64,000 nt of DNA, from NCBI GenBank assembly GCA_019828565.1, contig JAHDYR010000004.1, positions 124,001 through 188,000 on the forward strand. The letters run 5' to 3'. This DNA is from Carpediemonas membranifera BICM. Its lineage: Eukaryota; Protista; Fornicata. How positions within the stretch are numbered: position 1 is the stretch's first letter; every line of letters begins with the position of its first letter. This document shows, one piece after another, positions 25,828 through 60,401 of this stretch. The translations under genes were made by a program, and so were the position numbers. The notes under the pieces were generated by a model. It saw only the letters and a program-made list of their open reading frames with translations. It was not told the origin of the DNA and made no database searches.

Positions 25828-27057
25828 ATCCTTTGGCCGCTGCCTCGCCTCTACATGGCCTGATCGACGGCACGATAGTCTCCCCGGGACGTCCACAGCA
25901 TGCGGCTGTCCTCGCGTGCTTCCATCTCCCACATGCCATCCATCGGGGTGAGCACCGGCCCCTCCGCCATCAGACAGCTCCATGGCGACACCGCCGACCC
26001 CAGCCTGGTTGTTACTAACAGGGCCGGGTACTTTAGCCTCTACGACCCTCGCGCCGATACCTGGGGTGAGGCTGTGAGGGCACACCGACATGCTCTCAAC
26101 ACTCTCGATGTCTCGCCGCATGGGGAGATACTCAGCTCGGGTCGGGACTCGACCGTCAAGCTGTGGGACGCGAGACATCTTACTCGGCCCCTGACGGTCT
26201 TCTCGAACCATAGGTGTCAGCGATCAATGCTGGCTGCCTCGTTCTCGGCCCAAGGCCACATCATCGCCGGCGACGAGCGCGGTGGGGCAGTTGTGTACCA
26301 CAACAACGGCTCGTTCAACAGCCACCCCCACAGAGACCACATCCTGCCCGACGCAGAGCAGGGCGCCCACGTGCTCACGGCTGTAGGGACGAAGCTCGTG
26401 GCTGTGACGGGAGACAGATCGAGGCAACTCGTCGTGTGCGACCTGGGGCCGAGGAAGGAGGCTCATCATTTGATTGGCGGCATCACCCCGCAGTGGGCGG
26501 CGAGTCACGCCATCTCGACGATGGCTGCCACCAGAGACACCTGGACAAACACGAACTTTTGGGACGTCACGATGTCGGACTGCTCAAAGTCGCAAACACC
26601 ATCCAAATTCAGCGAGATGAATCAGCGACGATGCAGAAAGTTCGTTCCACGCCTCCCACTTACGCAGCTGGTACGTTCCCTATCCCGTTGGTGCAGAGAT
26701 GCAGCCCGCGGCGAGTTCAAGAGCGTTTACGCAGTAGATCTGAGCAATGGTGCGTCCTCCCCGAGAATATCACGCAGCAGCGAGTGCAGAGCAGTAGATG
26801 ACATGATCAGAGACGCCACGACGCGCATCTTCGCCCCAGAGGACAAGCTCCACCTCAAGCCCATCGGATCCACGCCCCTCACTGCTACAGACCTCACCCG
26901 CGTCCTCGACCACCTCTCGACATTGGACGGGCTGCCCAGAGAGTTCAGCATGAGGCTGACTGAGCCCGACCTCACTGTCACGATGAGGTATGGCAAGCTG
27001 GCCGCCGACAAGCCCGACAGCGCCGTCGACGATCTGCTCGCTGCCTGGCATGCGAGG

Positions 27058-30000
27058 ATGGCTGAGTGCATCCAGACGATGAAGGGTCACACCGATGACG
27101 TGTTCAGCGTCGCCTTCCTCCCCTGACGGCACCATGGTCACCGGGTCATCAGATGGGACGACCAAGCTGTGGGACAAGCGCGGCGTGTGCAAGATGACGA
27201 TGGAGCATGGCGGGGCTGTTCGGTGCATCGCCGTCTCCCCGGACGGGTCGACCATCGCCTCGGGCGGGACTGACCGCAAGATCAAGCTGTGGAGGCGCGG
27301 CAGACTCGTCAAGACGCTCGAGGGACACACCGATATTGTGAACAGCCTCGCCTTCTCCCGAGACGGCAAGACGCTGGTGTCCGGATCCGATGACAAGACA
27401 GTCAGGTCGTGGGACGTCGCCACCGGCGTGTGCAGGACGATGGAAGGGCACTCAGATTGGGTTCTCTCCGTCGCCATCTCCCCCGACGGCAAGACCATCG
27501 TCTCTGGATCAAAGGACAAGACAATCAAGGTGTGGATCGCTGAGTCGGGCAGACTCGAGCAGACTCTGGAGGGCCACACGAATTCTGTCGCCGCCGTCGC
27601 CATCTCCCCGGACGGCGCTCTGCTGGCCTCTGGGTCTGGCGACAAGACCATCAGACTCTGGGACACCAGGACCTGGGAGTGCGTCGCCGTCCTCAGGGGG
27701 CACGCGAGCTTTGTCTTCAGCGTCGCCTTCTCGCCCGACGGCAGGACCCTCGCCTCTGGGTCTTGGGACAACACCACCAAGCTCTGGAGCATCGACAGCG
27801 GCGAGTGCTTCGAGACGCTCTGGGGTCATGACAGAGATGTGAACAGCGTCGCCTTCTCCCCAGACGGGTCGACCCTGCTCTCTGGATCTGACGACAAAAC
27901 CGCCAAGCAGTGGTCCCTTGGTCGCTCTCCCGAGCTCACCGCCCTCGACCAGACCCTCGCCCAGCCTGTCCCGGCCGCGGCCATCGTCCGCCTCGAGGGC
28001 ACCGTCGCCGACCTCACCCGCGTCCTCGACCACCTCTCGACACGGCCCAGAGAGTTCAGCATGAGGCTGACTGAGCCCGACCTCACTGTCACGATGAGGT
28101 ATGGCAAGCTGGCCGCCGACAAGCCCGACAGCGCCGTCGACGATCTGCTCGCTGCCTGGCATGCGAGGATGGCTGAGTGCATCCAGACGATGAAGGGTCA
28201 CACCGCTGAGGTGCTCAGCGTCGCCTTCCTCCCCTGACGGCACCATGGTCACTGGGTCATGGGATGGGACGACCAAGCTGTGGGACAAGCGCGGCGTGTG
28301 CACGACGATGGAGCATGGCGGGAAGGTTCGGTGCATCGCCGTCTCCCCGGACGGGTCGACCATCGCCTCGGGCGGTGATGACCACAAGATCAAGCTGTGG
28401 GACCAGACCGGCAGACTCGTCAAGACGCTCGAGGGGCACACCAATAATGTGTGGAGCCTCGCCTTCTCCCCGAGACGGCAAGACGCTGGTGTCCGGATCC
28501 TGGGACAAGACAGTCAGGTCGTGGGACGTCGCCACCGGCGCGTGCAGGACGATGGAAGGGCACTCAGATTTGGTGCTCTCCGTCGCCATCTCCCCGACGG
28601 CAAGACCATCGTCTCTGGATCAAGGGATAAGACGATCAAGGTGTGGATCGCTGAGTCGGGCAGACTCTGGAGGGCCACACGAATTCTGTCTTCTCCGTCG
28701 CCATCTCTCCGGACGGCGCTCTGCTGGCCTCTGGGTCTGGCGACAAGACCATCAGACTCTGGGACACCAGGACCTGGGAGTGCGTCGCCGTCCTCAGGGG
28801 GCACACGCACTATGTCAACAGCGTCGCCTTCTCGCCCGACGGCAGGACCCTCGCCTCTGGGTCTGATGACAACACCATCAAGCTCTGGAGCATCGACAGC
28901 GGCGAGTGCTTCGAGACGCTCAGGGATCATGCCGATAAGGTGTGGAGCGTCGCCTTCTCCCCGGACGGGTCGACCCTGCTCTCTGGATCTGACGACAAAA
29001 CCGCCAAGCAGTGGTCACTTGGTCGCTCTCCCGAGCTCACCGCCCTCGCCCAGACCCTCGCCCAGCCTGTCCCGGCCGCGGCCATCGTCCGCCTCGAGGG
29101 CACCGTCGCCGACCTCACCCGCGTCCTCGACCACCTCTCGACGCGGCCCCGAGAGTTCAGCATGAGGCTGACTGAGCCCGACCTCACTGTCACGATGAGG
29201 TATGGCAAGCTGGCCGCCGACAAGCCCGACAGCGCCGTCGACGATCTGCTCGCTGCCTGGCATGCGAGGATGGCTGAGTGCATCCAGACGATGAAGGGTC
29301 ACACCGCTGAGGTGCTCAGCGTCGCCTTCCTCCCTGACGGCACCATGGTCACTGGGTCATGGGATGGGACGACCAAGCTGTGGGACAAGCGCGGCGCCTG
29401 CAAGATGACGATGGAGCATGGTGGGAAGGTTCGGTGCATCGCCGTCTCCCCGGACGGGTCGACCATCGCCTCGGGCGGTGATGACCACAAGATCAAGCTG
29501 TGGGACCAGTCCGGCAGACTCGTCAAGACGCTCGAGGGACACACAAATAATGTGTGGAGCCTCGCCTTCTCCCCAGACGGCAAGACGCTGGTGTCCGGAT
29601 CCGATGACAAGACAGTCAGGTCGTGGGACGTCGCCACCGGCGTGTGCAGGACGATGGAAGGGCACTCAGATTTGGTGCTCTCCGTCGCCATCTCCCCTGA
29701 CGGCAAGACCATCGTCTCTGGATCAAAGGACAAGACAATCAAGGTGTGGGTCGCTGAGTCGGGCAGACTCGAGCAGACTCTGGAGGGCCACACGAATTCT
29801 GTCTTCTCCGTCGCCATCTCCCCGGACGGCGCTCTGCTGGCCTCTGGGTCGTGGGACAGCACCATCAGACTCTGGGACACCAGGACCTGGGAGTGCGTCG
29901 CCGTCCTCAGGGGGCACACGCACTTTGTCTTCAGCGTCGCCTTCTCGCCCGACGGCAGGACCCTCGCCTCTGGGTCTGGTGACAACACCAAGCTCTGGAG

Positions 30001-32340
30001 CATCGCTAGCGGCGAGTGCTTCGCTACGCTCAGGGGTCATGCCGATAAGGTGTGGAGCGTCGCCTTCTCCCCAGACGGGTCGACCCTGCTCTCTGGATCT
30101 GACGACAAAACCGCCAAGCAGTGGTCCCTTGGTCGCTCTCCCGAGCTCACCGCCCTCGACCAGACCCTCGCCGAGCCTGTCCCGGCCGCGGCCATCGTCC
30201 GCCTCGAGGGCACCGTCGCCGACCTCACCCGCGTCCTCGACCACCTCTCGGCGCGGCCCAGAGAGTTCAGCATGAGGCTGACTGAGCCCGACCTCACTGT
30301 CACGATGAGGTATGGCAAGCTGGCCGCCGACAAGCCCGACAGCGCCATCGACGATCTGCTCGCTGCCTGGAATGCGAGGATGGCTGAGTGCATCCACACG
30401 ATGAAGGGTCACACCAACTGGGTGTTCAGCGTCGCCTTCCTCCCTGACGGCGCCATGGTCACTGGGTCATGGGATGGGACGACCAAGCTGTGGGACAAGC
30501 GCGGCGTGTGCAAGACGACGATGGAGCATGGCGGGTCTGTTCGGTGCATCGCCGTCTCCCCGGACGGGTCGACCATCGCCTCGGGCGGTGATGACCACAA
30601 GATCAAGCTGTGGGACCAGACCGGCAGACTCGTCAAGACGCTCGAGGGGCACACCAATGATGTGAGAAGCGTCGCTTTCTCCCGAGACGGCAAGACGCTG
30701 GTGTCCGGATCCGATGACAAGACAGTCAGGACGTGGGACGTCGCCACCGGCGAGTGCAGGACGATGGAAGGGCACTCCCATTTGGTGCTCTCCGTCGCCA
30801 TCTCCCCTGACGGCAAGACCATCGTCTCTGGATCAAAGGACAAGACAATCAAGGTGTGGGTCGCTGAGTCGGGCAGACTCGAGCAGACTCTGGAGGGCCA
30901 CACGAATTCTGTCTTCTCCGTCGCCATCTCCCCGGACGGCGCTCTGCTGGCCTCTGGGTCTGGCGACAACACCATCAGACTCTGGGACACCAGGACCTGG
31001 GAGTGCGTCGCCGTCCTCAGGGGGGCACGCGAGTTCTAGCAGTGTCGCCTTCTCGCCCGACGGCAGGACCCTCGCCTCTGGGTCTGGTGACAACACCAAG
31101 CTCTGGAGCATCGCTAGCGGCGAGTGCTTCGAGACGCTCAGGGGCCATGACGATTGGGTCCGCTGCGTCGCCTTCTCCCCGGACGGGTCGACCCTGCTCT
31201 CTGGATCTGACGACAAAACCGCCAAGTAGTGGTCCCTTGGTCGCTCTCCCGAGCTCACCGCCCTCGACCAGACCCTCGCCGAGCCTGTCCCGGCCGCGGC
31301 CATCGTCCGCCTCGAGGGCACCGTCGCCGACCTCACCCGCGTCTCGACCACCTCTCGGCGCGGCCCCGAGAGTTCAGCATGAGGCTGACTGAGCCCGACC
31401 TCACTGTCACGATGAGGTATGGCAAGCTGGCCGCCGACAAGCCCGACAGCGCCGTCGACGCCATGCTCGCTGCCTGGCATGCGAGGATGGCTGAGTGCAT
31501 CCACACGATGAAGGGTCACACCGATGACGTGACCAGCGTAGCCTTCCTCCCTGACGGCGCCATGGTCACTGGGTCATGGGATGGGACGACCAAGCTGTGG
31601 GACAAGCGCGGCGTGTGCACGACGATGGAGCATGGCGGGTCTGTTCGGTGCATCGCCGTCTCCCCGGACGGGTCGACCATCGCCTCGGGCGGTGATGACC
31701 GCAAGATCAAGCTGTGGAGGCGCGGCAGACTCGTCAAGACGCTCGAGGGGCACACCAGGGATGTGAGAAGCGTCGCCTTCTCCCCAGACGGCAAGACGCT
31801 GGTGTCCGGATCCGATGACAAGACAGTCAGGTCGTGGGACGTCGCCACCGGCGTGTGCAGGACGATGGAAGGGCACTCAGATTTGGTGCTCTCCGTCGCC
31901 ATCTCCCCTGACGGCAAGACCATCGTCTCTGGATCAAAGGACAAGACAATCAAGGTGTGGGACGCTGAGTCGGGCAGACTCGAGCAGACTCTGGAGGGCC
32001 ACACGAATTCTGTCTTCTCCGTCGCCATCTCCCCGGACGGCGCTCTGCTGGCCTCTGGGTCGTGGGACAGCACCATCAGACTCTGGGACACCAGGACCTG
32101 GGAGTGCGTCGCCGTCCTCAGGGGGCACACGCACTTTGTCTTCAGCGTCGCCTTCTCGCCCGACGGCAGGACCCTCGCCTCTGGGTCTGGTGACAACACC
32201 ATCAAGTTCTGGAGCATCGACAGCGGCGAGTGCTTCAAAACGCTCAGAGGTCACACAGATTGGGCGAACAGTGTCGTCTTCTCTCCAGACGGGTCGACCC
32301 TGCTCTCTGGGTCAAAGGACAACACCGCCAAGCAGTGGCC
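27058..32340 (+). repeat. Tandem array of five ~1.11-kb WD40-propeller cassettes
   Basis: Spacings 1111, 1101, 1110 and 1107 bp; each has 7 WD40 blades plus a ~80-aa linker. Confidence 0.95.
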
Positions 32341-35300
32341 CTCCATCAAGTCGCCAGAGATCGAGGAGGTCTGCGCCCAACCCACACTCGGCGCCGACAT
32401 CCGCCTGCCGTCCGACGACTCGCCCCTCTACCTCGCCGACCTGGCGCGGGTCGTCATCCACATCCTCGCCACGGGCCTGCCCCGCTCCTTCAAGATGAGG
32501 CTGGCCTTCCCTCCCGCGACAATCACGTTGGACAAGAACAGGTATTTCAAGACGAGCGCCGATAATTCTGAGCTGACAGAGCTGATCAAATCTTTCAACA
32601 CCCACATATCTCAGCGTATGGCCGAGAAGATCCTCCGCGAGCTTTCAGCTGTCGTGAATACGATCACCGCCGACTCGGCTCCGGAGTCCCTGCGCGCCTT
32701 AGTGCGTCGTCTCGACCAATACAAGAGCACCGCGAATGCAGCTGGGGATGGGCCCCGTTCGTCTGCCGTGCGTGACCCTGTTCTGCGGAGGCACCTCGCC
32801 GTGGCCGCGTTTGCCCAAGACTTCCTTGACCTCGTCGACGGGGGCATGAGCCCAAAGATCGCTGTCACCGCTCTGAAACACTCCGACGGTGCCACACCCG
32901 CCGACTATCACGACGCTTCGGAGCTCGTGCAGACCGCCATCGACGCGTTCATCGCCCAGCCGACGTCCCAGCACGCCGAGCGTATTCCCACGAGCTACAC
33001 CCACGCCGGCCTGATTCGCGCGCTGGCGTACACGAAGGAGTACATGGAGGACGCCGAGGAGGAGCTCGCCGAGTACCTGGCGGCCGTCCCCGAGCCTGAC
33101 CCCCTCGCCATCCTCGTCGAGGCCCGGATCCGCGGGTCAGCCCCCCTCACGCGGTTCTTCTGCGAGACATTCCCGCAGCTGGCAGAGAGATTCGCGACGG
33201 CCGATGAGCGGTCAACCGACGACAACGAAGCCGAGCCTCAGCCGCAGCCGGAGTCAGAGGACGACCGCATCCAGCAGGCCTGGGAGCAGTACGGCATGGC
33301 CAGCGCCGCGATGGACGAGCTGCTAGCGATGAGCGGCATGCGCGCGCTGAAGAGGGAGTGCATCGACATCGCTCAGCAGATCCGCGTCCGCAACGACCCG
33401 CGCACTGCGCAGCTCTACGCCGCCACGCCGATGCAGCTCAACTTCATCCTCAGCGGCAACCCTGGCACGGGCAAGAGCACGTGCGCTAAGCTGATCCACC
33501 GCTTCCTGGCGGACATCGGCGCTCGCGATGACACGTTCACCGAGCGCAACGGCGGCACCCTCGCCGACACGTCGCCGCTGGACATCACGAAGGAGTTGGA
33601 CAGCCTCTTCCCGGCCGGCTTCAGGGGCACCGTCTTCATCGACGAGGCCTACCAGCTGAACCCCGCCCAGAAGAAGTCGGGCAAGTCAGTCATGGACCGC
33701 ATCCTGGACGTGGCCGAGACGCGCCGCGGCGACGTCACGATCATCCTGGCAGGCTACAAGGACGACATGAAGGACCTGCTGGCGACGAACCCGGGTCTGA
33801 ACAGCCGCTTCTCGCGCCAGTTCGTGCTCGAGGACTTCGACAAGGACACGCTGCAGGAGATGTTCACCCAGCTGGCGACCAAGCAGGGCTGGTCCCTCGC
33901 CCCGGCAGTTGCCGAGATCGCTGGCCGTCGCCTCGAGCGCTTCAAGTCGCGCGACACCTTCGCCAACGGCCGCACCGTCCGCAACATGTTCAGCCAGGCC
34001 ATCGAGGCTGCGGCCAAGCGCCTCATCTTGGGCGGCGAGCACATGCTGCTGCCCGAGGACATCCTCGGACCAGCGCCATCGGCCGACTCGAACCCCGAGC
34101 TGCGCCGTCTCCTGGCCGAGCTGGACGGCTTGACCGGGCTTGGCGAGGTGAAGGAGGCTGTCCGGGGTCTGCTTCAGACAGCGAAGGTCAACTACGACAA
34201 CGAGCTCCACCTCCGCCCGCTGCACGCCTTCGCACTCAACCGCCTCTTCTTCGGAAACCCTGGGACGGGCAAGACGACCGTCGCACGCCTGTACGGCCAG
34301 ATCTTGAAGCACACGGGCCTGCTCAGCAGCGGCGAGGTCATCGAGAAGCGGCCCAGCGACCTGGTCGGCGACGCCGTGGGGCAGAGCCGGTCGAGAACGA
34401 AGGCCGCGATCGAGGAGGCGCGCGGCAAGGTGCTGCTCATCGACGAGTGCTACTCCCTCGACGACGGCGTGTACGGCAAGGAGGCGCTTGACACGATCGT
34501 TGAGCGCGTGCACAACAAGCCCGGCGACGACATCGCGGTGCTCATGCTCGGCTACGAGGAGCCCATCCGCCGCATGCTGCGCAACCAGAACGCGGGGCTG
34601 GCGAGCCGCTTCGACCCCGAGAGCGCGTTCATCTTTGCCGACTTCGACGACACCGCGCTCGAGGCCATCCTGAAGCACGCCATCGCCGAAAGCGGCCTCG
34701 CGTGCCGCAGAGCTGTCGTTGTCAACGCGATACAGCTGCTGGCCAAGGAGCGCGTCAAGCCCAACTTTGGCAACGCCCGCGCTGTGGTCAACCTCGTGAA
34801 CAAGGCGAAGCGCCACATGATCCAGCGCGATCCAACCTCGCGAAAGATCGCAGTTGCTGATCTCACGCAGGCTGACGACGGCAAGGACCCGTTCGAGCCG
34901 CTCGACGGCCTGTACAAGGTCAACCACATCCGGCAGAGGCTCGAGGACCTCGTCCGTATCAAGCAGGGCATGGAGCGGAACGGCAAGTCAGCCGCCTCAA
35001 TGCTGGTCCGCAACTACGTCTTCTCGGGCTCCCCGGGCACAGGCAAGACGACCATCGCGCGGTGCATGGCCAAGATCCTCTACCGCCTGGGTGTGCTGGC
35101 AACCGACACGTGCAAGGAGGTCGTCGCACGCGACATGATGGCAGGCTACGTGGGGCAGACGCCGGGCCGAGTCAAGGAGCTGATGGACGAGGCGGTCGGC
35201 GGCGTCTTCTTCGTGGACGAGGCTTACGGCCTTGGAGAGGGCATGTTCGGCAAGGAGGCGATCGAGACGATGCTCAGCGAGATGACGTCGGACAAGCACA

Positions 35301-36002
35301 AGGGCAAGACCGTCGTCGTCCTGGCGGGCTACCGCGCCGATCTCGACCGCATGATGGACGTCAACGCCGGCGTCCGCTCGCGCTTCACCGAGCCGATCGA
35401 CTTCCCCGACTGGTCGGCGGCCGACTGCACCAGCTTCATCGCGGGCAAGCTCGAGGGGAGCACCTCAAGTTCGGCTCAAACGAGCAGGCCGCTCTGCGCA
35501 GCCACATCGAGGCCGTTGTTGGCCGGGCTTCCTGGGCCAACGCACGAGACGCCAACACGATCTTCGAGGACCTGCTACGCCAGCAGGCGATCCGCGCCGC
35601 TTCGGTCGTCGAGGCTGAACCTTCGATCGCGGCCGATGACGTCGACGCCGCCATGGTCAAGTGCAAGCGGAACCACCCTGAGAGCGCCAGCCTGCCGCAT
35701 CTCGTCGAGGAGCAGCCAGTCGCCCTCGCCACCGACAGCGAGGTCCAGCCCAGACGCGAGACGCGGCAGGACGTCAGAGTTGAGCAAGTCGAGGAAGTCG
35801 ACGAGACTGTCGATGTGGTGACTCGCGTTGAGCGCGACGAGGGCGTAACCGACGAGATCTGGGAGGAGCTGGAGCTGGCCAAGCGCGAGGAGCAGCGCCG
35901 TCGGGAGGAGGAGGAGCGGCGTCTGCGAGAGATCGAGGAACAACTCAAGCGTGAGAAAGAGGAGAAGGCGCGCCGCGAGCTCGAGCGCCGGAAACGGGAG
36001 GC

Positions 36003-36059
36003 TGAGAGCCAGTGCAGTTTATGTAAACAGATCTACCTGCGCAAGCCAACAATGGCACA
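36003..36059 (+). repeat. 5' LTR (57 bp), copy 2
   Basis: TGAGAGCCAGTGCAGTTTATGTAAACAGATCTACCTGCGCAAGCCAACAATGGCACA; TG...CA ends. Confidence 0.95.
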
Positions 36060-39000
36060 ATATCGATATTCTGCTTCTACAGAATCACACAGTGGTCTAT
36101 CCGTGATAGACGTCTCTTCCCTCACAACGGGGTACGAGATCTGGTTACGGGAAGTCGGTAACGTCAAAAGACCCCGTTCTTTCCCCCACGCATTCACGGC
36201 AAAGACCCTCGAGCTTCTACAAGCCACATGGCGGCCCACCTCCACGTTCCCGACCTTCGAGTCGTTCTGGGACTCCCTTATCCCTGACGTGGTCTCGCAG
36301 GCACAACACGCCAAGCAAGAACCTGACAGACACGCCACGTCGTGCCGCGCAAGATACCGCGCGATCATCGACGCTCTGCAGGACGATCTCTTCTTGCTCT
36401 GTGCTGCAGCCGCCAACACCTATAAGGACAGCCCGCTTCTCGACCCGGCGATGCGCCGGATGCAGGCTGTTTACGACCGCGCCGAGGCCGAGCTGAACGA
36501 TAAGCTCGCCAGCCTCTGCACGGCCAGCCACGACCGCCACGAGGCGGACCCGGATGCGACCCTCACCTTCGCGACGCTAACGAACCCCCTGGACGACAAA
36601 CCGGCCCGATCGGCCGCGGATGTCGCGAGAATCGTCAACTCTCTCCCGTCAGCGGCAACGGCCGCCCCTCCGCCCCCGTGTCCGTGCGTGACCAGCTTCG
36701 CGCCGAGGCCAGGACCATCCTGCCTCACCTGTACCTTACCCTGATGCCAACACTCGACCGCGGTGCACGCCTCAAGGCCATCACAAGCAAGGGCACCCAA
36801 CTGTACGGCCAGAACGCGGCCCACCGCCTTAACACTCTGCGCCTGCAGAAGGCGTGCGACGGGTACAACCCCGTCGTCGAGGCCGATGGCTACCATAAGA
36901 TCCCCGACAGCGCCCTCCGCGCTGCGGTCCGGTCTGTCGCCCTCAAGGGATACGACGACGACGCGATCCCGCTATACGAGGCGCTGATCGAGCGGGATTC
37001 GGACGGCAACTGGCGTCCCGCCCGCGACTGCATAGACGCCCTCTCGACCCTCGAGACCGACCATCTCGGCCAGATCGTCGTCCCCAATGGCGCGAGTCGG
37101 ACCTCCGCCTGTTCGCCGCGGACGACCGCGTTATCTCCGTGGGCAAGATCGCCACCATGTCCATCACACTCCCTGGCATGGATGGCAAAACCGTCACGCT
37201 CGACTGGGACGTCCACATGATCACAGGCACCAGCGACAGGATGCTGATCGGCAAGGACCTCCTCAGGCACATCGGCTACGTCCTCAACGACCGCCTACTG
37301 ATACTCCCGTCCGAGAAGCCGGATGATAAGGACGATCTAGAAGAGCACAACATGATCGACGCCGACGTCTTCGAAGCGGCGTCAACCTCGGACTCGAAGC
37401 ATTCGCTCGCCGTCACGATCCCGGACGACCACGGCACCGAGTTCGCCAACAAGGTCCGAAGCATCGTCGAGGAGTTCGATGAGGTGTTCGACCCGGCTCT
37501 CCCGCCCGAAGGCAGCAAACTACAGCCTCACAAGATCGAACTCACACGCGATTTTTCACCTCAAGTGCCGTCCTCGACAGCTTGTCGGAGAGGCTGGCTC
37601 AGCCGCCCTCTCCGAGATCGAGAAGATGAAGAAGCTCGGCATCATACGAGACAGCCAGTCCGAGCACGCCAGCCGCCACACGATGGCAACCAAGAAGAAC
37701 GGCGAACCCCGCTTCTGCGTCGCATTCAACGATCTTAACGACGCCACGAAGGACGACGCCTTTCCCCTCCCCGATCTGAGGGACCTGCCCCACGAAGCCG
37801 GCGGATGCTCTTACTTTGCATCACTCGATCTCCGGTCCGGATACTGGCGGCAGCTGATGGAGCCGGCCAGCATCCACCTTACCTCGTTCGTAGTCCCCGG
37901 GCACCAATTCGAGTTCCTCAGGGTCCCGTTTGGACTTAAGAACGCCCCCTCCAAGTTTCAACGAGCGATGGAGGCCGTGCTAGATGGCATCCCCGGCCAC
38001 CGGGTCTACGTGGATGACATATTCCTCTACGCACGGACCGAAGAAGGATTCCTCAACACCCTGAGACTCACCCTCCAGAGAGCCAAGGACAACCGCCTGC
38101 GCCTCCGTGCGGACAAATGTACCATCGGCGCCGCCGAAGTGGAGGTCTGCGGATTCATCATCAACAGCTCCGGCCGCTCGGTGAGCCCAGGCCGCGTCGC
38201 CGCGCTGAAGGAGCTGCCCGCCCCCCACCACCGTCACAGAGCTCAGACGCACGATGGGCAAGTTTAACCACCTCGCAAACTACCTCCCGCAACTCAGCTC
38301 AGCCACAGCCCCCCTCAACGCCCTCCTCAAGGGGTCACCCAAGAAGCTAGACAAGCTCCCTTGGACTGAGGAACACGACAAGGCATTCGCGGCTCTGGAA
38401 GGAGCTGTGCACCGACAACAAGGCATTGGCACTACCCAACCCTGACCTGCAAGTGGACACTTGAGACAGACGCGTCCACAATCGCAGCCGGCGGAGTGCT
38501 GTGGCAACACGAGGGCGACACGAAGAAACCCCTCGCGTACTTCTCAAAGACGTTCACAGAGACCCAACGCCGCTGGGCGACGGTCGAGCAAGAGCTCTAC
38601 GCAGTCATATACTGCATCACCCGGCCAGAGTTTAGCCAGATTCTCAAGCTGAAGCCATTCACCGTACTCACAGATCACAAGAACATCGTGTGGATGATTC
38701 GCAAGGCTGAGGAAGGGACGCGCAAGCTCACGCGATGGAGACTCATCCTATCCGAGTACCCCTTCGACATCATGCATATCGCAGGGACAAATAACGTCGT
38801 CGCGGACGCCCTCTCCCGCCCCAGCGGCGCGGCGATCAGCGAAATCGCCAGCAGCACCCACCGCTTCGACATTCAGCAGGCCCACGCTGGAGCCAACGGC
38901 CATGCTTCGATCAAACAAACGATCGCCCATCTCAAGGAAGCCGGCAAGACCTGGTCTTCCATGAACTCAGACGTCGCGGAGCACGTCGCGACTTACCCAG

Positions 39001-40180
39001 TCTGCCAGAAGCTCAAATCCCACCCCATCGCCAAGGCCCAGTGGCATACGACCCAGAAGACCCGCCCATTCGAGGCGGTGCAGATAGACACGCTCGGCCC
39101 GCTTCCAAAGACGAATGGCCTCGCTCACGTGATCGTGTTCACCGACGTCTTCAGCAAGTTCACTGTGCTCAAGCCGGTTGCGTCAACCTCGGCAGAAGAA
39201 GCCGCCGACGCGATGCTCCAGGTGTGGTCGCTCTTCGGCGCACCCAGCCTGATCCAGACAGACCAGGGAAGTCAGTTCAAGAACTCAACCATCGCCGCTC
39301 TCAACAAGAAGATCAGCCTGAACCACAGGTTCTCCACGGCGTACCACCCACAGAGTAACGGCGTTGTCGAGAGAGTCAATGGGACCATCATGCGCAGACT
39401 GCGCGCCCTGCTACTAGACTCAGAAACGACCGACTGGCCCGCACTTATCCCAATCGTGCAACACATTATCAACACTTCGACACACTCGACTACCGGCTTC
39501 ACGCCGTTCGAGCTGCTTTTTCGGACACACGTCCGCGCTCACGGCCCTCCCGGAGTCACGCATCATCAGCGCCGCCAAGGCGACGCAAGACACACCTACC
39601 ATCCAGGCCATTAACGCATTCCACACCGACATACAGGCCATGCACGACGCAGCCCGCGCGAAGATCGCCGCATACGAGCGTCACAAGGCCGCACAAACCC
39701 AACCGGCGGACAACTTCGACTGGAAACTCGAACGCCTAGTGCTCCTGAGATATCCTCACAAGGCCCCATCCAAGATTCTGCCTCCAGTCCGCGGCCCGCT
39801 ACAACTCCTCAGGGAAGGGAAGAGCCCCCAACACATTCGTCCTCCGTGACCTCGTCACCAAGTCCGAGCTGCTCGTCCACCAGGACCGCCTCATTCGCTT
39901 CGACCCAGGCACAGCAGACCTCAAGACACTCGAGCGCATCGCCGCATACGAACAAGACGAACAACAAGTCTCCGCCATCGTCGGCCACCGCGAGCGCAAC
40001 CGACGCCTCGAGCTCCTCGTCCACTGGGAAGGCCTAGAAGACTCCGAGGACTCGTACATTCCGTATAACGCATATTACGACCGCCTCGCCGCCCTGGATG
40101 ACTACCTACGCCTCAACCCAGGTCTCACGCCCCTCTTCGCACGTTACAAGCGGAAGTTCCGGGGCAATGGCCGCCGTTAG
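36052..40180 (+). CDS. Gag-Pol polyprotein (gag-like, protease remnant, RT, RNase H, integrase, chromodomain); several 1-bp frameshifts
   Basis: ATG in ACAATGG context inside the LTR; MLIGKDLL (37241); LDLRSGYW, PFGLKNAP, YVDD (38007); ETDAS, TDHKN, NVVADALSR; IDTLGP, TDQGSQF, SNGVVER; IVGHR...LVHWEGLEDSEDSY; TAG at 40178-40180. Confidence 0.9.
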
Positions 40181-40197
40181 CTGGCTAGCTTCGCCTT

Positions 40198-40208
40198 GAG
40201 GAGGGAAG
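40198..40208 (+). other. Polypurine tract
   Basis: GAGGAGGGAAG directly abuts the 3' LTR. Confidence 0.85.
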
Positions 40209-40265
40209 TGAGAGCCAGTGCAGTTTATGTAAACAGATCTACCTGCGCAAGCCAACAATGGCACA
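40209..40265 (+). repeat. 3' LTR (57 bp), copy 2
   Basis: Identical to 36003-36059; followed by AGGC. Confidence 0.95.
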
Positions 40266-49700: not shown

Positions 49701-51331
49701 CGGTCGCCGCTGCACAGCGCGTTCGTGCACGACCAGCCGCAGGCCTTCGCGGCGCTGCTCAAGGCCGGCTGCCTGCTCGACGACGCCTTTCCCGGACGGC
49801 CACCCGCTGCTGGCCGCCGTCGCCAAGCTGCCGATGCTGGCCGCGATGCTGGCCGCGAGGGTTGACATCGACACCGTCAGCCGGAACACGACTGCGCTCG
49901 TGGTCGCCATCCAGGGCGGCCACTGGGACTCCGCGACGAAGCTGCTCGCCCGCGGCGCCGACCCCCTCCTCCCGCCGGTCGGCGTCAACGCGCTGCAGGC
50001 CGTCAAGGGCGTGGCCGACCCGCTCATGGCCGGCGTGATCCGGGCCGCCATCAACGACGCCCTGACGAAGCAGCTCAGCGACGACATCACGCAGGGCGAC
50101 ACCGCTGCCGTGAAGCGCCTGCTCGTGGCGGGCGTGTCCGCGAACGGCGTGGACGGCAAGATGCCGCCGCTCTTCGCTGCCGTCAAGGCGGGCAACTTCG
50201 ACATCGTCAGCCTGCTGCTGAAGCACGGCGCCGACCGGGCCGCGACGTACAAGGGCAAGACGGCTGCGCAGACAGTCAAGAAGGGCAGCAACCTGCAGTA
50301 TCTCCTGATCCAGGACCAGACGCCCGAGCCGCTCGTGCAGCCCGACCTCAACGCGGACATCACGAAGCCGGCGGGCAGCATCGCGTTCAGCCAGGCCGAC
50401 CGCATCGGCGAGGGCGGCATGGCGGCCGTCTTCCGCGGCACGTACGGCGGCACCGACTGCGCCGTCAAGGTCGTCGCGCGGGCCGACCTGAACGCGGTGC
50501 AGGCCGACCGACTCCAGAGCGAGATCTTCATCCACAAGCAGCTGCGCCACAGCAACGTCGTCGCGCTCTACGCGCTCGAGCAGGACGACCGGGAGATCCG
50601 GCTCGCGCTCGAGCTCGCGTCGGGGTCGCTCTCGGCGCTGCTGCTCTCGAAGGCCGACCTGCCCTGGGACGCGCGGCTGAAGTTCGCGCGCGACATCGCG
50701 GCGGCCATGGCGTTCATCGCGGGCGAGGGCTACGAGCACAGGGACCTCAAGTCGCTCAACATCCCTCGTCGCGAACAAGAAGGCCAAGATCAGCGACTTT
50801 GGGCTGACCGCGCGGCTCGACCAGCGCGTGGCGGACGTCGAGGGCTCGTGGCCGTGGATGGCGCCCGAGCGCTTCGACGGCGTGGGCGGCGAGAAGGCCG
50901 ACGTCTTCGCCTTCGGCATCACGCTCTGGGAGATCGCCGCGCGCGACATCCCGTACCGCCAGGAGCGCCTCGGGCTCGACACCATCCGCGCGCACGTGCG
51001 GGCTGGCTACCGGCCGATGACCCCCGCGGGCACGCCGGCGGCCGTGGGCGAGCTGATCCGCCGCTGCGTGGCGCCCGACCCGCGCGACCGCCCCACCTTC
51101 GCGGAAGTCGTCGCCGCGCTGCCCGACAGCGTCGCGACCGAGATGTACACGGAGAGCGCCGTGCGCAACCACGAGGTCGACACCTTCGCGAACGCCAGCG
51201 CGCCCTGGATGACGCTGTCCGAAGACGAGAGAGCAGCCGCGCTCGCCGCGATGGGCACGGTCACCGCGACATACCGCACGAACGCGCCCAGCGCCCCGGG
51301 CCTGCGCACGCTGAACGACATGTATAGGTAA
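46709..51331 (+). CDS. WD40-array (2 cassettes) / ankyrin / TKL-like kinase gene, copy 2; in-frame TAG at 48086-48088
   Basis: Twin of 17581-22202; cassettes at 47237 and 48347; same kinase motifs; frame is open upstream to an ATG at 46487. Confidence 0.8.
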
Positions 51332-53117: not shown

Positions 53118-53618
53118 TGTTTATACGTGTGTATATGTGCAAGAGATGTCAATACCGGCTTGGGGATACGCTCAATCGACTCCCAGTACAAGTCGACTCC
53201 GCCTTAGCATCGCCGTCGACGCCAGCGGCTCCTGTTCAGACAGCAGCGAGTACTACCTGTGACAGGAGTTCACAAGCATCGTTAACACGCTCAGCATGCG
53301 CAAGATCCGCCTGGCCACCCGATCCCGCCTCAGAGCCGACAACGACGCCATGTCGTCCCTCAACCCGACCCCGCAGCGCTTCCCGCGGTCTATAGGGAAG
53401 TCCTCCTCGTCTCCGACGATCACGCCCCGAGCAGCCCTCACTCTTCCACCCATTGATGAGCTCTCCGCGCAGTTTAGCAAGAGTCGGAGCAGAATACCGT
53501 CCGGTCCAGGGTCAAGACAGCATGCCAGGCGCCGCTCAGACATCCCTACGCTGCCACTGTTCAGGCTGGGGGGCGTCGGCGAGATTGATGAGAAGACGAC
53601 GACACCTCGATTAGTAAC

Positions 53619-54957
53619 TTGATGGCCACACCGAGAACGGGGCAGCACAGGGATGAGACTCTCTCAGAATGCGCGGATGAGATCAAGAATGCAGCCGGGG
53701 ATCGTGCCAGGTTCATGAGGTCACATCGCGTCGAGGTGAAGCACGTGCGCACGATGAAGCGGACTATAGTTCTCAAACACGCGTTATCAGTGGAGCTGAA
53801 GGCAGTGGTATCGCCCACACCGTATGTGGTCACATGCGGGTCGGGCAGCAATTTCCTGGTGGACGCAGCAAGCTCGATCGAGGCGTTCAGGTCAGCGAAG
53901 GTGCTAGAAATCACTACGGCGCAGATTACGGCCACGCAGCGGACAAAGGAGCGCATGGAAGCCTTGGAGAGCGCGCACTGCTCCGCCTACCCCCCACGTG
54001 AAGGGCCGCAGACGCACCGGAATTGTCGGGTACACCAACACGCTCGCCCGGCAGGTCCGCAAGCTCGAGGCCGAGAAGGAGGCAGCGCTGCGTGAGTCCA
54101 TGGACGCAGCGAAGGCCCACCGCCAGGCCATCGGGTCGCTTTCATACATTGGTGGGCAACGAGACGACCCGCCCAACCTCACTGTGAAACCTCTGCAGGG
54201 TCGGGACTTCCAGGTCACCTCGCTCTCCCCCAGTGGCCCCAGACTGGACACGAGGGAGAGTCTCCGGCGTATGGCCACCAGCAAGGGCGACCTGACTCTC
54301 GACTCGACTGTGAGAATGATCCAGCGGCATTGGAGGGCCTGGGTCGAACGGAAGAGGCGGGCAAGGTACGCTATAGCCGGGGGGATGCTCGTGGGCATAT
54401 GGAGGGACAGGCGGGGCGTCGGGGGCGGCAAGAACAGGACGCTCGAGACGCTTTTATATTTATTCCATCGCATTTATTTTATTATGGGCGAGAGGCTGCC
54501 CGACTCACTATGGAAGTACGCCAGTCCAATACAGCAGCGCCGCTTCATGCTCCAGCTGGAGTCGAGGGGCTTCATCCCTTCGCAGGTTAAGGAAGCCACT
54601 GAGCGCGAGAGGGAGCTCGACAAGAGGCTGAAGGAGTACGAGAACAAGGACGCGTTGCTCAGGCGGTCCATTCTCGAGCGTGCGGCGAGCACCACTGCCG
54701 CGGAGGAGACCCCCGACGAGAAGCTCTCCTCCGGGTTCAAGCGGTACCTTGGACACACCCCCGGCGGGAAGAGCCGAGACCTCCTCTACGAGGCTTCAGG
54801 CCTTGTGTTCGGCGGGAAGCGCTCGAACGCCCTTTCCAAGGCGATGACTGCCGGCTCCGTCATGGGCGTGGCGACCGTGCTCGGGCAGCGGGGCGGGTAC
54901 GAGCAGAGCTTCATGAACACGCCCACAGCCACGCAGATGAGCTTCACTAGACGGTAA
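53619..54957 (+). CDS. IQ-motif hypothetical protein, copy 2 (one frameshift near 53990)
   Basis: Twin of 24490-25827; IQRHWRAW motif. Confidence 0.6.
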
Positions 54958-55028
54958 ATCCTTTGGCCGCTGCCTCGCCTCTACATGGCCTTATCGACGG
55001 CACGATAGTCTCCCGGGACGTCCACAGC

Positions 55029-58000
55029 ATGCGACTGTCCTCGCATGCTTCCATCTCCCACATGCCATCCATCGGGGTGAGCATCGGCCCCTCCGCCATC
55101 AGACAGCTCCATGGCGACACCGCCGACCCCAGCCTGGTTGTTACTAACAGGGCCGGGTACTTTAGCCTCTACGACCCTCGCGCCGATACCTGGGGTGAGG
55201 CTGTGAGGGCACACCGACATGCTCTCAACACTCTCGACGTCTCGCCGCATGGGGAGATACTCAGCTCGGGTCGGGACTCGACCGTCAAGCTGTGGGACGC
55301 GAGACATCTTACTCGGCCCCTGACGGTCTTCTCGAACCATAGGTGTCAGCGATCAATGATGGCTGCCTCGTTCTCGGCCCAAGGCCACATCATCGCCGGC
55401 GACGAGCGCGGTGGGGCAGTTGTATACCACAACAACGGCTCGTTCAACAGCCACCCCCACAGAGACCACATCCTGCCCGACGCAGAACAGGGCGCCCACG
55501 TGCTCACGGCTGTAGGGACGAAGCTCGTGGCTGTGACGGGAGACAGATCGAGGCAACTCGTCGTGTGCGACCTGGGGCCGAGGAAGGAGGCTCATCATTT
55601 GATTGGCGGCATCACCCCGCAGTGGGCGGCGAGTCACGCCATCTCGACGATGGCTGCCACCAGAGACACCTGGACAAACACGAACTTTTGGGACGTCACG
55701 ATGTCGGACTGCTCAAAGTCGCAAACACCATCCAAATTCAGCGAGATGAATCAGCGACGATGCAGAAAGTTCGTTCCACGCCTCCCACTTACGCAGCTGG
55801 TACGTTCCCAATCCCGTTGGTGCAGAGATGCAGCCCGCGGCGAGTTCAAGAGCACTAACACAGTGGATCTCAACAATGGTGCGTCCTCCCCGAGAATCTC
55901 ACGCAGCAGCGAGTGCAGAGCAGTAGATCACATGATCAGAGACGCCACGACGCGCGTCTTCGCCCCAGAGGACAAGCTCCACCTCAATCCCATCGGATCC
56001 TCGCCCCTCACCGCTACAGACCTCAGCCGCGTCCTCGACCACCTCTCGACATTGGACGGGCTGCCCAGAGAGTTCAGCATGAGGCTGACTGAGCCCGACC
56101 TCACTGTCACGATGAGGTATGGCAAGCTGGCCGCCAACAAGCCCGACAGCGCCATCGACGATCTGCTCGCTGCCTGGAATGCGAGGATGGCTGAGTGCAT
56201 CCACACGATGAAGGGTCACACCAACTGGGTGTTCAGCGTCGCCTTCCTCCCTGACGGCGCCATGGTCACTGGGTCATGGGATGGGACGACCAAGCTGTGG
56301 GACAAGCGCGGCGCCTGCAAGATGACGATGGAGCATGGTGGGACTGTTCGGTGCATCGCCGTCTCCCCGGACGTGTCGACCATCGCCTCGGGCGGGACTG
56401 ACCGCAAGATCAAGCTGTGGGACCAGACCGGCAGACTCGGCAAGACGCTCGAGGGGCACACCAATAATGTGAGAAGCCTCGCCTTCTCCCGAGACGGCAA
56501 GACGCTGGTGCCCGGATCCGATGACAAGACAGTCAGGACGTGGGACGTCGCCACCGGCGAGTGCAGGACGATGGAAGGGCACTCAGATTGGGTGCTCTCC
56601 GTCGCCGTCTCCCCCGACGGCAAGACCATCGTCTCTGGATCATGGGATTATACCATCAAGGTGTGGATCGCTGAGTCGGGCAGACTCGAGCAGACTCTGG
56701 AGGGCCACAAGAATCCTGTCAACGCCGTCGCCATCTCCCCGGACGGCGCTCTGCTGGCCTCTGGGTCTGGCGACCACACCATCAGACTCTGGGACACCAG
56801 GACCTGGGAGTGCGTCGCCATCCTCAGGGGGCACACGCACTATGTCAACAGCGTCGCCTTCTCGCCCGACGGCAGGACCCTCGCCTCTGGGTCTGGTGAC
56901 AACACCATCAAGTTCTGGAGCATCGACAGCGGCGAGTGCTTCAAAACGCTCAGAGGTCACACAGATTGGGCGAACAGTGTCGTCTTCTCCCCGGACGGGT
57001 CGACCCTGCTCTCTGGGTCAAAGGACAAGACCGCCAAGCAGTGGTCCCTTGGTCGCTCTCCCGAGCTCACCGCCCTCGACCAGACCCTCGTCCAGCCTGT
57101 CCCGGCCGCGGCCATCGTCCGCCTCGAGGGCACCGTCGCCGACCTCACCCGCGTCCTCGACCACCTCTCGACGCGGCCCAGAGAGTTCAGCATGAGGCTG
57201 ACTGAGCCCGACCTCACTGTCACGATGAGGTATGGCAAGCTGGCCGCCGACAAGCCCGATAGCGCCATCGACGCCATGCTCGCTGCCTGGCAAGCGAGGA
57301 TGGCTGAGTGCATCCAGACGATGAAGGGTCACACCGATGGCGTGATCAGCGTCGCCTTCCTCCCCGACGGCGCCATGGTCACTGGGTCATGGGATGGGAC
57401 GACCAAGCTGTGGGACAAGCGCGGCGTGTGCACGACGACGATGGAGCATGGTGGGAAGGTTCGGTGCATCGCCGTCTCCCCGGACGGGTCAACCATCGCC
57501 TCGGGCGGTGATGACCGCAAGATCAAGCTGTGGAGGCGCGGCAGACTCGTCAAGACGCTCGAGGGACACACCAGGGATGTGAGAAGCCTCGCATTCTCCC
57601 CAGACGGCAAGACGCTGGTGTCCGGATCATATGACAAGACAGTCAGGTCGTGGGACGTCGCCACCGGCGAGTGCAGGACGATGGAAGGGCACTCAGATTG
57701 GGTGCTCTCCGTCGCCATCTCCCCCGACGGCAAGACCATCGTCTCTGGATCATGGGATTATACCATCAAGGTGTGGGTCGCTGAGTCGGGCAGAGTCGAG
57801 CAGACTCTGGAGGGCCACACGAATTCTGTCGCCGCCGTCGCCATCTCCCCGGACGGCGCTCTGCTGGCCTCTGGGTCATTGGACAAGACCATCAGACTCT
57901 GGGACACCAGGACCTGGGAGTGCGTCGCCGTCCTCAGGGGGCACGCGAGTTCTGTCCGCAGTGTCGCCTTCTCGCCCGACGGCAGGACCCTCGCCTCTGG

Positions 58001-60401
58001 GTCTTGGGACAACACCATCAAGTTCTGGAGCATCGACAGCGGCGAGTGCTTCGAGACGCTCAGGGGTCATGACAATATTGTGCGCTGCGTCGCCTTCTCC
58101 CCAGACGGGTCGACCCTGCTCTCTGGATCTGACGACAAGACCGCCAAGCAGTGGCCCTCCACTAACTCACCAGAGATCGAGGAGGTCTGCGCCCGACCCA
58201 CACTCGGCGCCGACATCCGCCTGCCGTCCGACGACTCGCCCCTCAACATCCGCGACCTGGCGTGGGTCGTCATCCACATCCTCGCCACGGGCCTGCCCCG
58301 CTCCTTCGAGATGAGGCTGGCCCACCCCGAATGCACCGTCTCTCTTGGTCCTACCGGTTTCACGACGAGCCAAGCCGCCGATGTTGAAGCCCTTCTCGAG
58401 CTACTCAACCGCCACCCTATGTTACTGACACTGTTGGCTGAAACACGTGCTCTCGACGCCGTTGACGAAGCGCTGTACGTGGCCGCGGATCTGAGCGACG
58501 CCAAGCGCCTGCTGGCCGCCGCCGGCCCGCACGCGACGCAGCACGAGGCGCGAGTGCTCGCGCTGAGGACCGGCCTCGCCCGCCTCCAGCCCGTGCAGGC
58601 GCTCGCCAAGGACCCGATGCCCGCGCTCAAGGGCCGCGTCAAGGAGGCGCTGGAGAGGAGCGACGAGCTCCACGCGCACATCATCAGCGGCGACGTCGGC
58701 AAGATGCGCTCGAAGACGCTGCTCAGAGACAAGCTGTTCGGCCCCGTCGTCCTCAACTGCCTCGACCGCGAGCGCCGGTCGCCGCTGCACAGCGCATTCG
58801 TGCACGACCAGCCGCAGGCCTTCGCGGCGCTGCTCAAGGCCGGCTGCCTGCTCGACGACGCCTTCCCGGACGGCCACCCGCTGCTGGCCGCCGTCGCCAA
58901 GCCGCCGATGCTGGCCGCGATGCTGGCCGCGAGGGTTGACATCGACACCGTCAGCCGGAACACGACTGCGCTCGTGGTCGCCATCCAGGGCGGCCACTGG
59001 GACTCCGCGACGAAGCTGCTCGCCCGCGGCGCCGACCCCCTCCTCCCGCCGGTCGGCGTCAACGCGCTGCAGGTCGTCAAGGGCGTGGCCGACCCGCTCA
59101 TGGCCGGCGTGATCCGGGCCGCCATCAACGACGCCCTGACGAAGCAGCTCAGCGACGCCATCACGCAGGGCGACACCGCTGCCGTGAAGCGGCTGCTCGC
59201 GGCGGGCGTGTCCGCGAACGGCGTGGACGGCAAGATGCCGCCGCTCTTCGCTGCCGTCAAGGCGGGCAACTTCGACATCGTCAGCCTGCTGCTGAAGCAC
59301 GGCGCCGACCGGGCCGCGACGTACAAGGGCAAGACGGCTGCGCAGACAGTCAAGAAGGGCAGCAACCTGCAGTATCTCCTGATCCAGGACCAGACGCCCG
59401 AGCCGCTCGTGCAGCCCGACCTCAACGCGGACATCACGAAGCCGGCGGGCAGCATCGCGTTCAGCCAGGCCGACCGCATCGGCGAGGGCGGCATGGCGGC
59501 CGTCTTCCGCGGCACGTACGGCGGCACCGACTGCGCCGTCAAGGTCGTCGCGCGGGCCGACCTGAACGCGGTGCAGGCCGACCGACTCCAGAGCGAGATC
59601 TTCATCCACAAGCAGCTGCGCCACAGCAACGTCGTCGCGCTCTACGCGCTCGAGCAGGACGACCGGGAGATCCGGCTCGCGCTCGAGCTCGCGTCGGGGT
59701 CGCTCTCGGCGCTGCTGCTCTCGAAGGCCGACCTGCCCTGGGACGCGCGGCTGCAGTTCGCGCGCGACATCGCGGCGGCCATGGCGTTCATCGCGGGCGA
59801 GGGCTACGAGCACAGGGACCTCAAGTCGCTCAACATCCTCGTCGCGAACAAGAAGGCCAAGATCAGCGACTTTGGGCTGACCGCGCGGCTCGACCAGCGC
59901 GTGGCGGACGTCGAGGGCTCGTGGCCGTGGATGGCGCCCGAGCGCTTCGACGGCGTGGGCGGCGAGAAGGCCGACGTCTTCGCCTTCGGCATCACGCTCT
60001 GGGAGATCGCCGCGCGCGACATCCCGTACCGCCAGGAGCGCCTCGGGCTCGACACCATCCGCGCGCACGTGCGGGCTGGCTACCGGCCGATGATCCCCGC
60101 GGGCACGCCGGCGGCCGTGGGCAAGCTGATCCGCCGCTGCGTGGCGCCCGACCCGCGCGACCGCCCCACCTTCGCGGAGGTCGTCGCCGCGCTGCCCGAC
60201 AGCGTCGCGACCGAGATGTACACGGAGAGCGCCGTGCGCAACCACGAGGTCGGCACCTTCGCGAACGCCAGCGCGCCCTGGACGCTGTCCGAAGACGAGA
60301 GAGCAGCCGCGCTCGCCGCGATGGGCACGGTCACCGCGACATACCGCACGAACGCGCCCAGCGCCCCGGGCCTGCGCACGCTGAACGACATGTATAGGTA
60401 A
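55029..60401 (+). CDS. Intact WD40-array (2 cassettes) / ankyrin / TKL-like kinase protein with an extra divergent N-terminal WD40 segment
   Basis: Uninterrupted ORF (open from 54963, first ATG 55029); cassettes at 56187 and 57300; adaptor, ankyrin repeats and a complete kinase motif set. Confidence 0.92.
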   Translation: MRLSSHASISHMPSIGVSIGPSAIRQLHGDTADPSLVVTNRAGYFSLYDPRADTWGEAVRAHRHALNTLDVSPHGEILSSGRDSTVKLWDARHLTRPLTVFSNHRCQRSMMAASFSAQGHIIAGDERGGAVVYHNNGSFNSHPHRDHILPDAEQGAHVLTAVGTKLVAVTGDRSRQLVVCDLGPRKEAHHLIGGITPQWAASHAISTMAATRDTWTNTNFWDVTMSDCSKSQTPSKFSEMNQRRCRKFVPRLPLTQLVRSQSRWCRDAARGEFKSTNTVDLNNGASSPRISRSSECRAVDHMIRDATTRVFAPEDKLHLNPIGSSPLTATDLSRVLDHLSTLDGLPREFSMRLTEPDLTVTMRYGKLAANKPDSAIDDLLAAWNARMAECIHTMKGHTNWVFSVAFLPDGAMVTGSWDGTTKLWDKRGACKMTMEHGGTVRCIAVSPDVSTIASGGTDRKIKLWDQTGRLGKTLEGHTNNVRSLAFSRDGKTLVPGSDDKTVRTWDVATGECRTMEGHSDWVLSVAVSPDGKTIVSGSWDYTIKVWIAESGRLEQTLEGHKNPVNAVAISPDGALLASGSGDHTIRLWDTRTWECVAILRGHTHYVNSVAFSPDGRTLASGSGDNTIKFWSIDSGECFKTLRGHTDWANSVVFSPDGSTLLSGSKDKTAKQWSLGRSPELTALDQTLVQPVPAAAIVRLEGTVADLTRVLDHLSTRPREFSMRLTEPDLTVTMRYGKLAADKPDSAIDAMLAAWQARMAECIQTMKGHTDGVISVAFLPDGAMVTGSWDGTTKLWDKRGVCTTTMEHGGKVRCIAVSPDGSTIASGGDDRKIKLWRRGRLVKTLEGHTRDVRSLAFSPDGKTLVSGSYDKTVRSWDVATGECRTMEGHSDWVLSVAISPDGKTIVSGSWDYTIKVWVAESGRVEQTLEGHTNSVAAVAISPDGALLASGSLDKTIRLWDTRTWECVAVLRGHASSVRSVAFSPDGRTLASGSWDNTIKFWSIDSGECFETLRGHDNIVRCVAFSPDGSTLLSGSDDKTAKQWPSTNSPEIEEVCARPTLGADIRLPSDDSPLNIRDLAWVVIHILATGLPRSFEMRLAHPECTVSLGPTGFTTSQAADVEALLELLNRHPMLLTLLAETRALDAVDEALYVAADLSDAKRLLAAAGPHATQHEARVLALRTGLARLQPVQALAKDPMPALKGRVKEALERSDELHAHIISGDVGKMRSKTLLRDKLFGPVVLNCLDRERRSPLHSAFVHDQPQAFAALLKAGCLLDDAFPDGHPLLAAVAKPPMLAAMLAARVDIDTVSRNTTALVVAIQGGHWDSATKLLARGADPLLPPVGVNALQVVKGVADPLMAGVIRAAINDALTKQLSDAITQGDTAAVKRLLAAGVSANGVDGKMPPLFAAVKAGNFDIVSLLLKHGADRAATYKGKTAAQTVKKGSNLQYLLIQDQTPEPLVQPDLNADITKPAGSIAFSQADRIGEGGMAAVFRGTYGGTDCAVKVVARADLNAVQADRLQSEIFIHKQLRHSNVVALYALEQDDREIRLALELASGSLSALLLSKADLPWDARLQFARDIAAAMAFIAGEGYEHRDLKSLNILVANKKAKISDFGLTARLDQRVADVEGSWPWMAPERFDGVGGEKADVFAFGITLWEIAARDIPYRQERLGLDTIRAHVRAGYRPMIPAGTPAAVGKLIRRCVAPDPRDRPTFAEVVAALPDSVATEMYTESAVRNHEVGTFANASAPWTLSEDERAAALAAMGTVTATYRTNAPSAPGLRTLNDMYR

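Follow-up and report, generated by a model that had tools for sequence, protein, structure and literature searches.

A window of 64,000 nucleotides (nt) in the Carpediemonas membranifera genome (C5:124001-188000, from an assembly of 24,237,836 bases in 69 contigs) carries arrays of a long repeat, here termed the cassette, within genes that are candidates for a receptor family. The organism is a free-living metamonad and probably haploid (PMC8516963). A cassette is 1113 nt, or 371 amino acids (aa), and comprises a linker (L) domain of ~90 aa and a seven-blade WD40 propeller. The intact gene (55932..60401, this and all features below being on the + strand) encodes ~1490 aa in the order L, seven WD40 repeats, L, seven WD40 repeats, terminal L, ankyrin repeats and tyrosine kinase-like (TKL) kinase. 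Its reference cassette (56067..57179) takes in the second half of an L domain, seven blades and the first half of the next L, and is followed by a terminal cassette (57180..58157), a diverged terminal L domain linking the propeller array to the effector (58167..58460), ankyrin repeats (58779..59330, end approximate) and the kinase (59475..60190, end approximate). Judged from its sequence the latter is a TKL-type kinase with intact catalytic motifs (Gly loop, AVK, HRDLK and DFG); PF07714 is matched at E 2e-42, and the motifs are kept in 10 copies. The likely gene start is the ATG at 55932 (with equivalents at 17863, 26803 and 46991), which matches the annotated start of the paralog P0122, and contig depth jumps near 55870. 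No signal peptide or membrane span was seen in the product of this gene.

The window as a whole holds 14 cassettes in five arrays, with nine distinct types, as an earlier note on this DNA had counted; nine of the cassettes, in three genes, fall within the span 25900-60401 to which that note drew attention. Extension to C5:1-258000 gives 43 cassettes and, once segmental copies are removed, 21 distinct types, on which the analyses of types, entropy and mosaicism are based unless the window is specified. A genome search located further cassettes on C5, C63, C8 and C26, and arrays among paralogs of this one assembly have from one to five cassettes. Because the same blade is 86-94% identical between cassettes and different blades are 53-69% identical, the conserved unit is, on sequence grounds, the whole propeller plus L domain, in agreement with what had been proposed.

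Where the cassettes differ was assessed with 42 codons, GH+1, +2, +3 and +5 and SGS+1 and +3 of each of the seven blades, a set based on the Podospora sites and fixed after the alignment had been seen, without ranking by variability. It corresponds to positions 10, 11, 12, 14, 30 and 32 of the HET-E repeat, which are the sites of high dN/dS there (PMC12222747), and the earlier identification with the variable sites of Podospora HET-D, HET-E and HET-R is borne out. At the 42 codons entropy averages 1.21 bits, versus 0.14 for the other propeller codons and 0.13 for the linker (1.02, 0.12 and 0.10, respectively, with the nine types of the window alone); of 100,000 site sets drawn at random, none reached the 1.21-bit level. 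The set includes every one of the 18 most variable sites, and median identity between types is 70.6% at its codons and 96.1% elsewhere. Yet the set, with 11% of sites, accounts for 53% of the entropy, and a few codons outside it are variable too (142, 165, 201 and 287), with some variation near the c-d loop. Variation is concentrated at the binding face, not confined there: the description of the propellers as hypervariable only at that face stands except for its ‘only’, and a scaffold described as almost invariant is 96% identical between types without being invariant. All of the individual variants previously listed are present. After GH these are, for blade 1, TAEVLS/TNWVFS/TDDVTS/TNWVIS/TDDVLR/TDDVFS/TDGVIS, for blade 3, TNNVWS/TNDVRS/TRDVRS/TDVVNS/TDIVNS, for blade 5, TNSVFS/TNSVAA/TSYLAT/TSYLTT/KNPVNA, for blade 6, THFVFS/ASFVRS/THYVNS/ASSVRS, and for blade 7, ADKVWS/DDWVRC/TDWANS/DRDVNS/DNIVRC; after SGS they are DDK/YDN/WDY/KDK/WDS/GDH/LDK. 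An AlphaFold2 model of the terminal cassette of the kinase gene (57180-58157) is a seven-blade propeller of seven four-stranded blades (pLDDT ~98; root mean square deviation 0.8-1.0 A to 7big and 5yzv), in which the 42 sites, placed by secondary structure rather than coordinates, are in the d-a loop, the start of strand a and the b-c loop, as expected from the top-face location that had been claimed. By our mapping, GH+3, GH+5 and SGS+1 correspond to the R1-2, R1 and D-1 top-face hot spots of PMC3419727.

Amino-acid change at the top face outpaces the synonymous background. Counted conservatively as distinct changes, there are 76 amino-acid and 7 synonymous changes at 21 hot-spot codons (GH+3, GH+5 and SGS+1), i.e. 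1.50 versus 0.58 per site; synonymous density per site is 0.49 for the flanking codons, 0.21 for the remainder of the propeller and 0.12 for the linker. Hot-spot amino-acid change is therefore 2.6-fold the synonymous rate locally and 3-12-fold that of the background, an excess of the diversifying type that the note had anticipated (1.50 against a synonymous 0.12-0.58), and pairwise nonsynonymous difference (pN), 0.316 at the face and 0.030 elsewhere, agrees with the distinct-change counts. The codons flanking the hot spots are under purifying selection (ratio 0.25). As the other 21 pre-chosen codons (positions 10, 11 and 32 pooled) have a nonsynonymous to synonymous ratio of 0.82, the excess is concentrated at three canonical positions, 12, 14 and 30.

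A further feature, which the note had missed, is mosaicism of short tracts. Each of the 14 loops occurs as 3-13 alleles, which are combined in many ways. By the four-gamete test, incompatibility between sites is 0.19 at distances of up to 10 nt and levels off at about 0.6 once they are 30-60 nt apart; the data call for a minimum of 48 recombination points, though recurrent hot-spot mutation inflates this count. Each type can be pieced together from 8-32 segments that also occur unchanged in other types (median length 43 nt), which leaves just 57 private bases over all types. The cassette at 31367 differs from a clean segmental copy, C5:90994, solely by a 14-nt patch (32006..32020), where 7 substitutions convert SYLAT to NSVFS, the allele of the upstream neighbour cassettes; two other copies also keep SYLAT, and either recent conversion or mis-polishing could account for the patch. 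Where blade 7 ends, CAG has become a TAG stop (31227..31229; also at 1989, 18958 and 48086), which is inside a tract of at least 271 nt common to a kinase gene and an AAA gene, and so provides an independent marker of inter-gene exchange. For a possible transfer of variable motifs from blade to blade, a single exact match of 16 nt was seen (blades 3 and 7), the longer stretches in common being part of the scaffold. Comparison of the copies establishes exchange of short tracts both within and between genes.

Alternative effectors are found on the arrays. The gene at 26803..36003 has five tandem cassettes (26938..32341, starts at ~26938, 28049, 29150, 30260 and 31367), a terminal L domain (32351..32644) and, instead of ankyrin repeats and kinase, three tandem SpoVK/CbbX-type AAA+ domains (33455..35500, end approximate) with AAA_lid_6 and intact Walker A and B motifs. 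A 2.5-kb upstream block, 98.9% identical, precedes both this gene and the kinase gene at 55932, which points to effector swap by crossover within arrays, another aspect passed over before. The absence of a NACHT or NB-ARC domain, part of the earlier claim, extends to the window, the family proteins and the genome, and with models of STAND ATPases the AAA tail gives no more than sub-threshold P-loop matches.

The L domain, which the note had treated as a linker without recognizing a family, appears to be an unnamed domain family found only in C. membranifera. A profile from four L variants identifies at least 150 genomic places on 17 contigs, and against 1.8 billion proteins it recovers 27 representatives, with 20 of 20 checked being from C. 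membranifera and no match from another organism among those 20. The domain has no Pfam, PDB or Atlas match. It is predicted to be a small alpha/beta fold, for which the best structural match is at Z 5.3 (from a model of pLDDT 53) and template-modelling score by query is <0.5 in Atlas. Architectures in the family follow L-WD40x7-(L)n-effector, the tails being kinase, IBR or RhoGEF (kinase plus IBR, kinase plus RhoGEF and IBR alone in P0128, P0132 and P0147). Others, P0129, P0139, P0141, P0145 and P0144, are L-only (13 L domains in P0129) or L-L-kinase with no propeller, and may be adaptors; the spread of L across architectures would then resemble homotypic adaptor systems.

That the variants exist outside the assembly is indicated by contigs from two short-read runs (seemingly one data set filed twice), which cover most of the gene at 55932. 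Three linked variant sets in them, TDDVLR, VGFSS and ASFVRS, match assembly alleles exactly, which confirms three variant haplotypes (absence of the variants from accurate reads being what the note had named as refutation); two other contig variant sets are probably from diverged paralogs.

The reading preferred here, with a probability of roughly 0.6, is that these genes form a Carpediemonas-specific family of cytosolic sensor-effectors, (L-WD40x7)n-L-effector, for non-self recognition, in which conversion and selection keep a set of specificities. Gene conversion and unequal crossover in the duplicated cluster would homogenize the scaffold and remix binding-face alleles, with diversifying selection retaining such alleles so that each propeller has its own specificity. 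A foreign or altered protein, from a virus, an intracellular bacterium or other non-self source, would be bound by a propeller, and this would cluster the protein, perhaps via L-L contacts, and so switch on the kinase or AAA ring. Several considerations weigh against this. Signalling by L-L contacts is a guess from architecture. The change counts are not a formal codon-model test, and synonymous diversity is itself 2-4 times higher beside hot spots, so local mutation may be behind part of the hot-spot signal. Two of the three arrays in the span that drew attention carry the TAG stop, and one of these also a retrotransposon. Expression of the receptor genes, though likely, depends on the runs being RNA, a guess from ~10 Mb of contigs with uneven cover.

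An alternative accepts diversification as real and selected, and assigns it a non-immune role such as sorting of endogenous cargo, prey-derived molecules, or kin or mating recognition. The top face of WD40 propellers is a binding site for many endogenous partners (PMC3419727), the kinase, IBR and RhoGEF tails suit general signalling, and no cell-death effector domain was found. However, a face that binds endogenous partners is normally conserved, which does not suit 3-13 alleles per loop; it is in NLR-like proteins with an ATPase (NLR, NOD-like receptor) that high internal conservation is over-represented (PMC13449251); and restriction to one species, with pseudogenised copies, suits a conflict system. 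A role of this sort is unlikely. More doubtful is an elaboration of the preferred reading into a full innate recognition pathway independent of NOD, where variable propellers would signal via homotypic L interactions to L-only adaptors and L-kinases, and the repertoire would be regenerated clonally by targeted micro-conversion or mutagenesis of binding loops.

Programmed or locally targeted mutagenesis, rather than selection alone, as the maker of loop variants is also improbable, even if it would account for the raised synonymous density mentioned above. In its favor, the allele codons at GH+2, GH+3 and SGS+1 have T in third position in a ratio of 44:11 versus 28:145 in the rest of the propeller (p 6e-18), effector DNA having, in contrast, a G+C content at third codon positions (GC3) of 0.94, and of 103 steps between alleles, 24 take 2-3 base changes. 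The T-ending alleles could come from escape from GC-biased conversion in polymorphic patches, from retained ancestral codons or from local mutagenesis, any of which could explain them, and under gene conversion linked synonymous diversity is expected to rise around selected sites. A diversity-generating retroelement was considered and rejected: adenine-only change fails, since at best 92 of 119 alleles fit, 19 sites cannot be derived from one template codon, and TGG is common. There is no bAvd in the genome (the reverse transcriptase of such elements had no separate search), the retroelement nearby is gypsy-type, with RNase H and integrase, and hardly any hot spot differs between segmental copies.

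Neutral decay of a recently amplified repeat, with unconstrained top-face sites, is very improbable; stops, the retroelement, large segmental duplications and a pN/pS (pS, its synonymous counterpart) of ~0.8-0.9 in the linker and ~0.74 in the effector tail are in keeping with it, but neither the excess of amino-acid over synonymous change at hot spots nor the purifying selection between them is. Hardly credible is an artefact in which a few true cassettes were scrambled by nanopore errors and short-read polishing. In its favor, duplicate copies are indel-rich, the patch at 32006 could be mis-polishing and such repeats are hard to assemble (PMC12222747). Against it, the variants replace whole codons in frame and do so at structural positions, clean segmental copies differ by 0-2 substitutions in all but a few cases, three haplotypes are recovered from short-read contigs, and an artefact could alter the number of copies or individual combinations but would leave the pool of alleles as it is.

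Several of the copies in the window are broken, which had also been overlooked earlier. In the AAA gene there are the TAG at 31227, frameshifts at homopolymers, which probably reflect errors of assembly, and, in its 3′ coiled coil, a gypsy-type retrotransposon (36004..40266; RNase H, integrase, 57-bp direct repeats), beyond which lies the displaced 3′ end of the gene with coiled coil and Cys/His motif (40267..40537). The element has a copy in window positions 1-29014, and the C5:74138 copy is without the element at that point. A two-cassette ankyrin-kinase gene (46991..51331) has the TAG at 48086 and a second propeller lacking one blade. Outside 25900-60401 lie its segmental copy, with 0 substitutions in the cassettes (17863..22202), and a noisy segmental duplicate of the AAA gene, represented by its final three cassettes (2..3109). 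Hexamitids use a code where TAG is Gln; such a reading is not supported here, as genes end in TAA, TAG and TGA. A blade-6 frameshift shared by one cassette type was likewise discarded, what is shared being an in-frame loss of 3 nt and the frameshift in the window a homopolymer extra G.

Window positions 1-29014 are a 97.8% copy of 29261-58154, and because the first copy is indel-rich, copy counts and frameshifts in the window are partly assembly noise. More broadly, C5:1-258000 contains duplications of 12-51 kb, direct and inverted and nested within one another, that are 97-99.7% identical and may be real or uncollapsed assembly, and the adjacent cassettes at C5:221784 and C5:222897, which differ at one base, reflect a very recent whole-cassette duplication or an assembly repeat. 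Replication complexes of the ORC/Cdc6 type are lacking in C. membranifera, which may use recombination to replicate (PMC8516963), and this could favor the C5 duplications. Upstream of the intact gene, and in frame with it, is an open frame with a degenerate, unrelated WD40 segment (54951..55931) that is probably not part of the receptor; as a receptor N-terminus it was rejected, paralogs being without the segment and contig depth low. Degenerate WD40 open frames of this kind, 54951-55931 and 25879-26802, are in frame upstream of some receptor genes and barely covered by contigs. A 454-aa open frame with no Pfam match (24463-25827, with a copy near 53592-54957) is duplicated together with receptor genes. 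Neighbours include genes for an ankyrin-DHHC palmitoyltransferase (22769-23986), F-actin capping protein beta (42673-43551), an iron-containing alcohol dehydrogenase (61123-62196) and Tam41 (62844-63944).

How free-living protists detect viruses or intracellular invaders is largely unknown, and the family is a concrete candidate in a cultured species without detectable NLRs. It looks like an independently evolved repertoire for non-self sensing that has converged on the WD40 residues diversified in fungi; its repeat unit and effectors are not those of the fungal proteins, and its unnamed domain may serve as an adaptor in signalling. From a practical perspective, it is a natural library of propeller binders on one scaffold.

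No description of this propeller-L family was found in literature searches, the literature covered being incomplete. The best propeller matches, at ~35-55% identity, are bacterial repetitive WD40 proteins (cyanobacterial kinase-WD40; Thermomonospora, PDB 5yzv), which match the propeller only and not the L domain; as ideal WD40 repeats resemble each other, horizontal transfer is not claimed. For the triple SpoVK/CbbX AAA+ tail the whole three-domain module is found at 30-44% identity in oomycetes, chytrids, haptophytes and bacteria (some are named NFX1-type zinc finger protein), with the difference that in Carpediemonas it is fused behind variable propellers. In an unrelated protein from a JGI metagenome, P0224, WD40 repeats are again coupled with a triple SpoVK-type AAA module. 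The ROCO-LRR and NB-ARC-TPR proteins of brown algae (PMC3341825) are likewise candidate immune receptors inferred from repeat shuffling, and likewise outside animals and land plants; they shuffle exons, whereas the Carpediemonas arrays are continuous open frames of WD40 with mixing within the repeat. NLR-like proteins of other lineages with high internal conservation (PMC13449251) share the coupling of near-identical repeats to an ATPase or kinase, though here the ATPase is the triple SpoVK/CbbX AAA+, not STAND, and most members carry a kinase.

The closest parallel is with the HNWD/NWD NLRs of Podospora anserina, HET-D, HET-E and HET-R, in their homogenised WD40 scaffold (PMC4986451, PMC12222747, PMC13449251), in diversification of the same repeat positions, and in exchange within and between genes. 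The differences are the lack of a NACHT or HET domain in Carpediemonas and the order of parts, with an N-terminal HET effector there and L-propeller(s)-L-effector, the effector being C-terminal, here. In Podospora, single 42-aa repeats are 80-100% identical within a gene; with blades of one propeller 53-69% alike, copy changes in Carpediemonas would instead keep propellers whole, and the diversity is that of paralogs in one genome, as represented by one assembly. The family thus appears to work like the fungal hypervariable WD40 sensors while not being an NLR.

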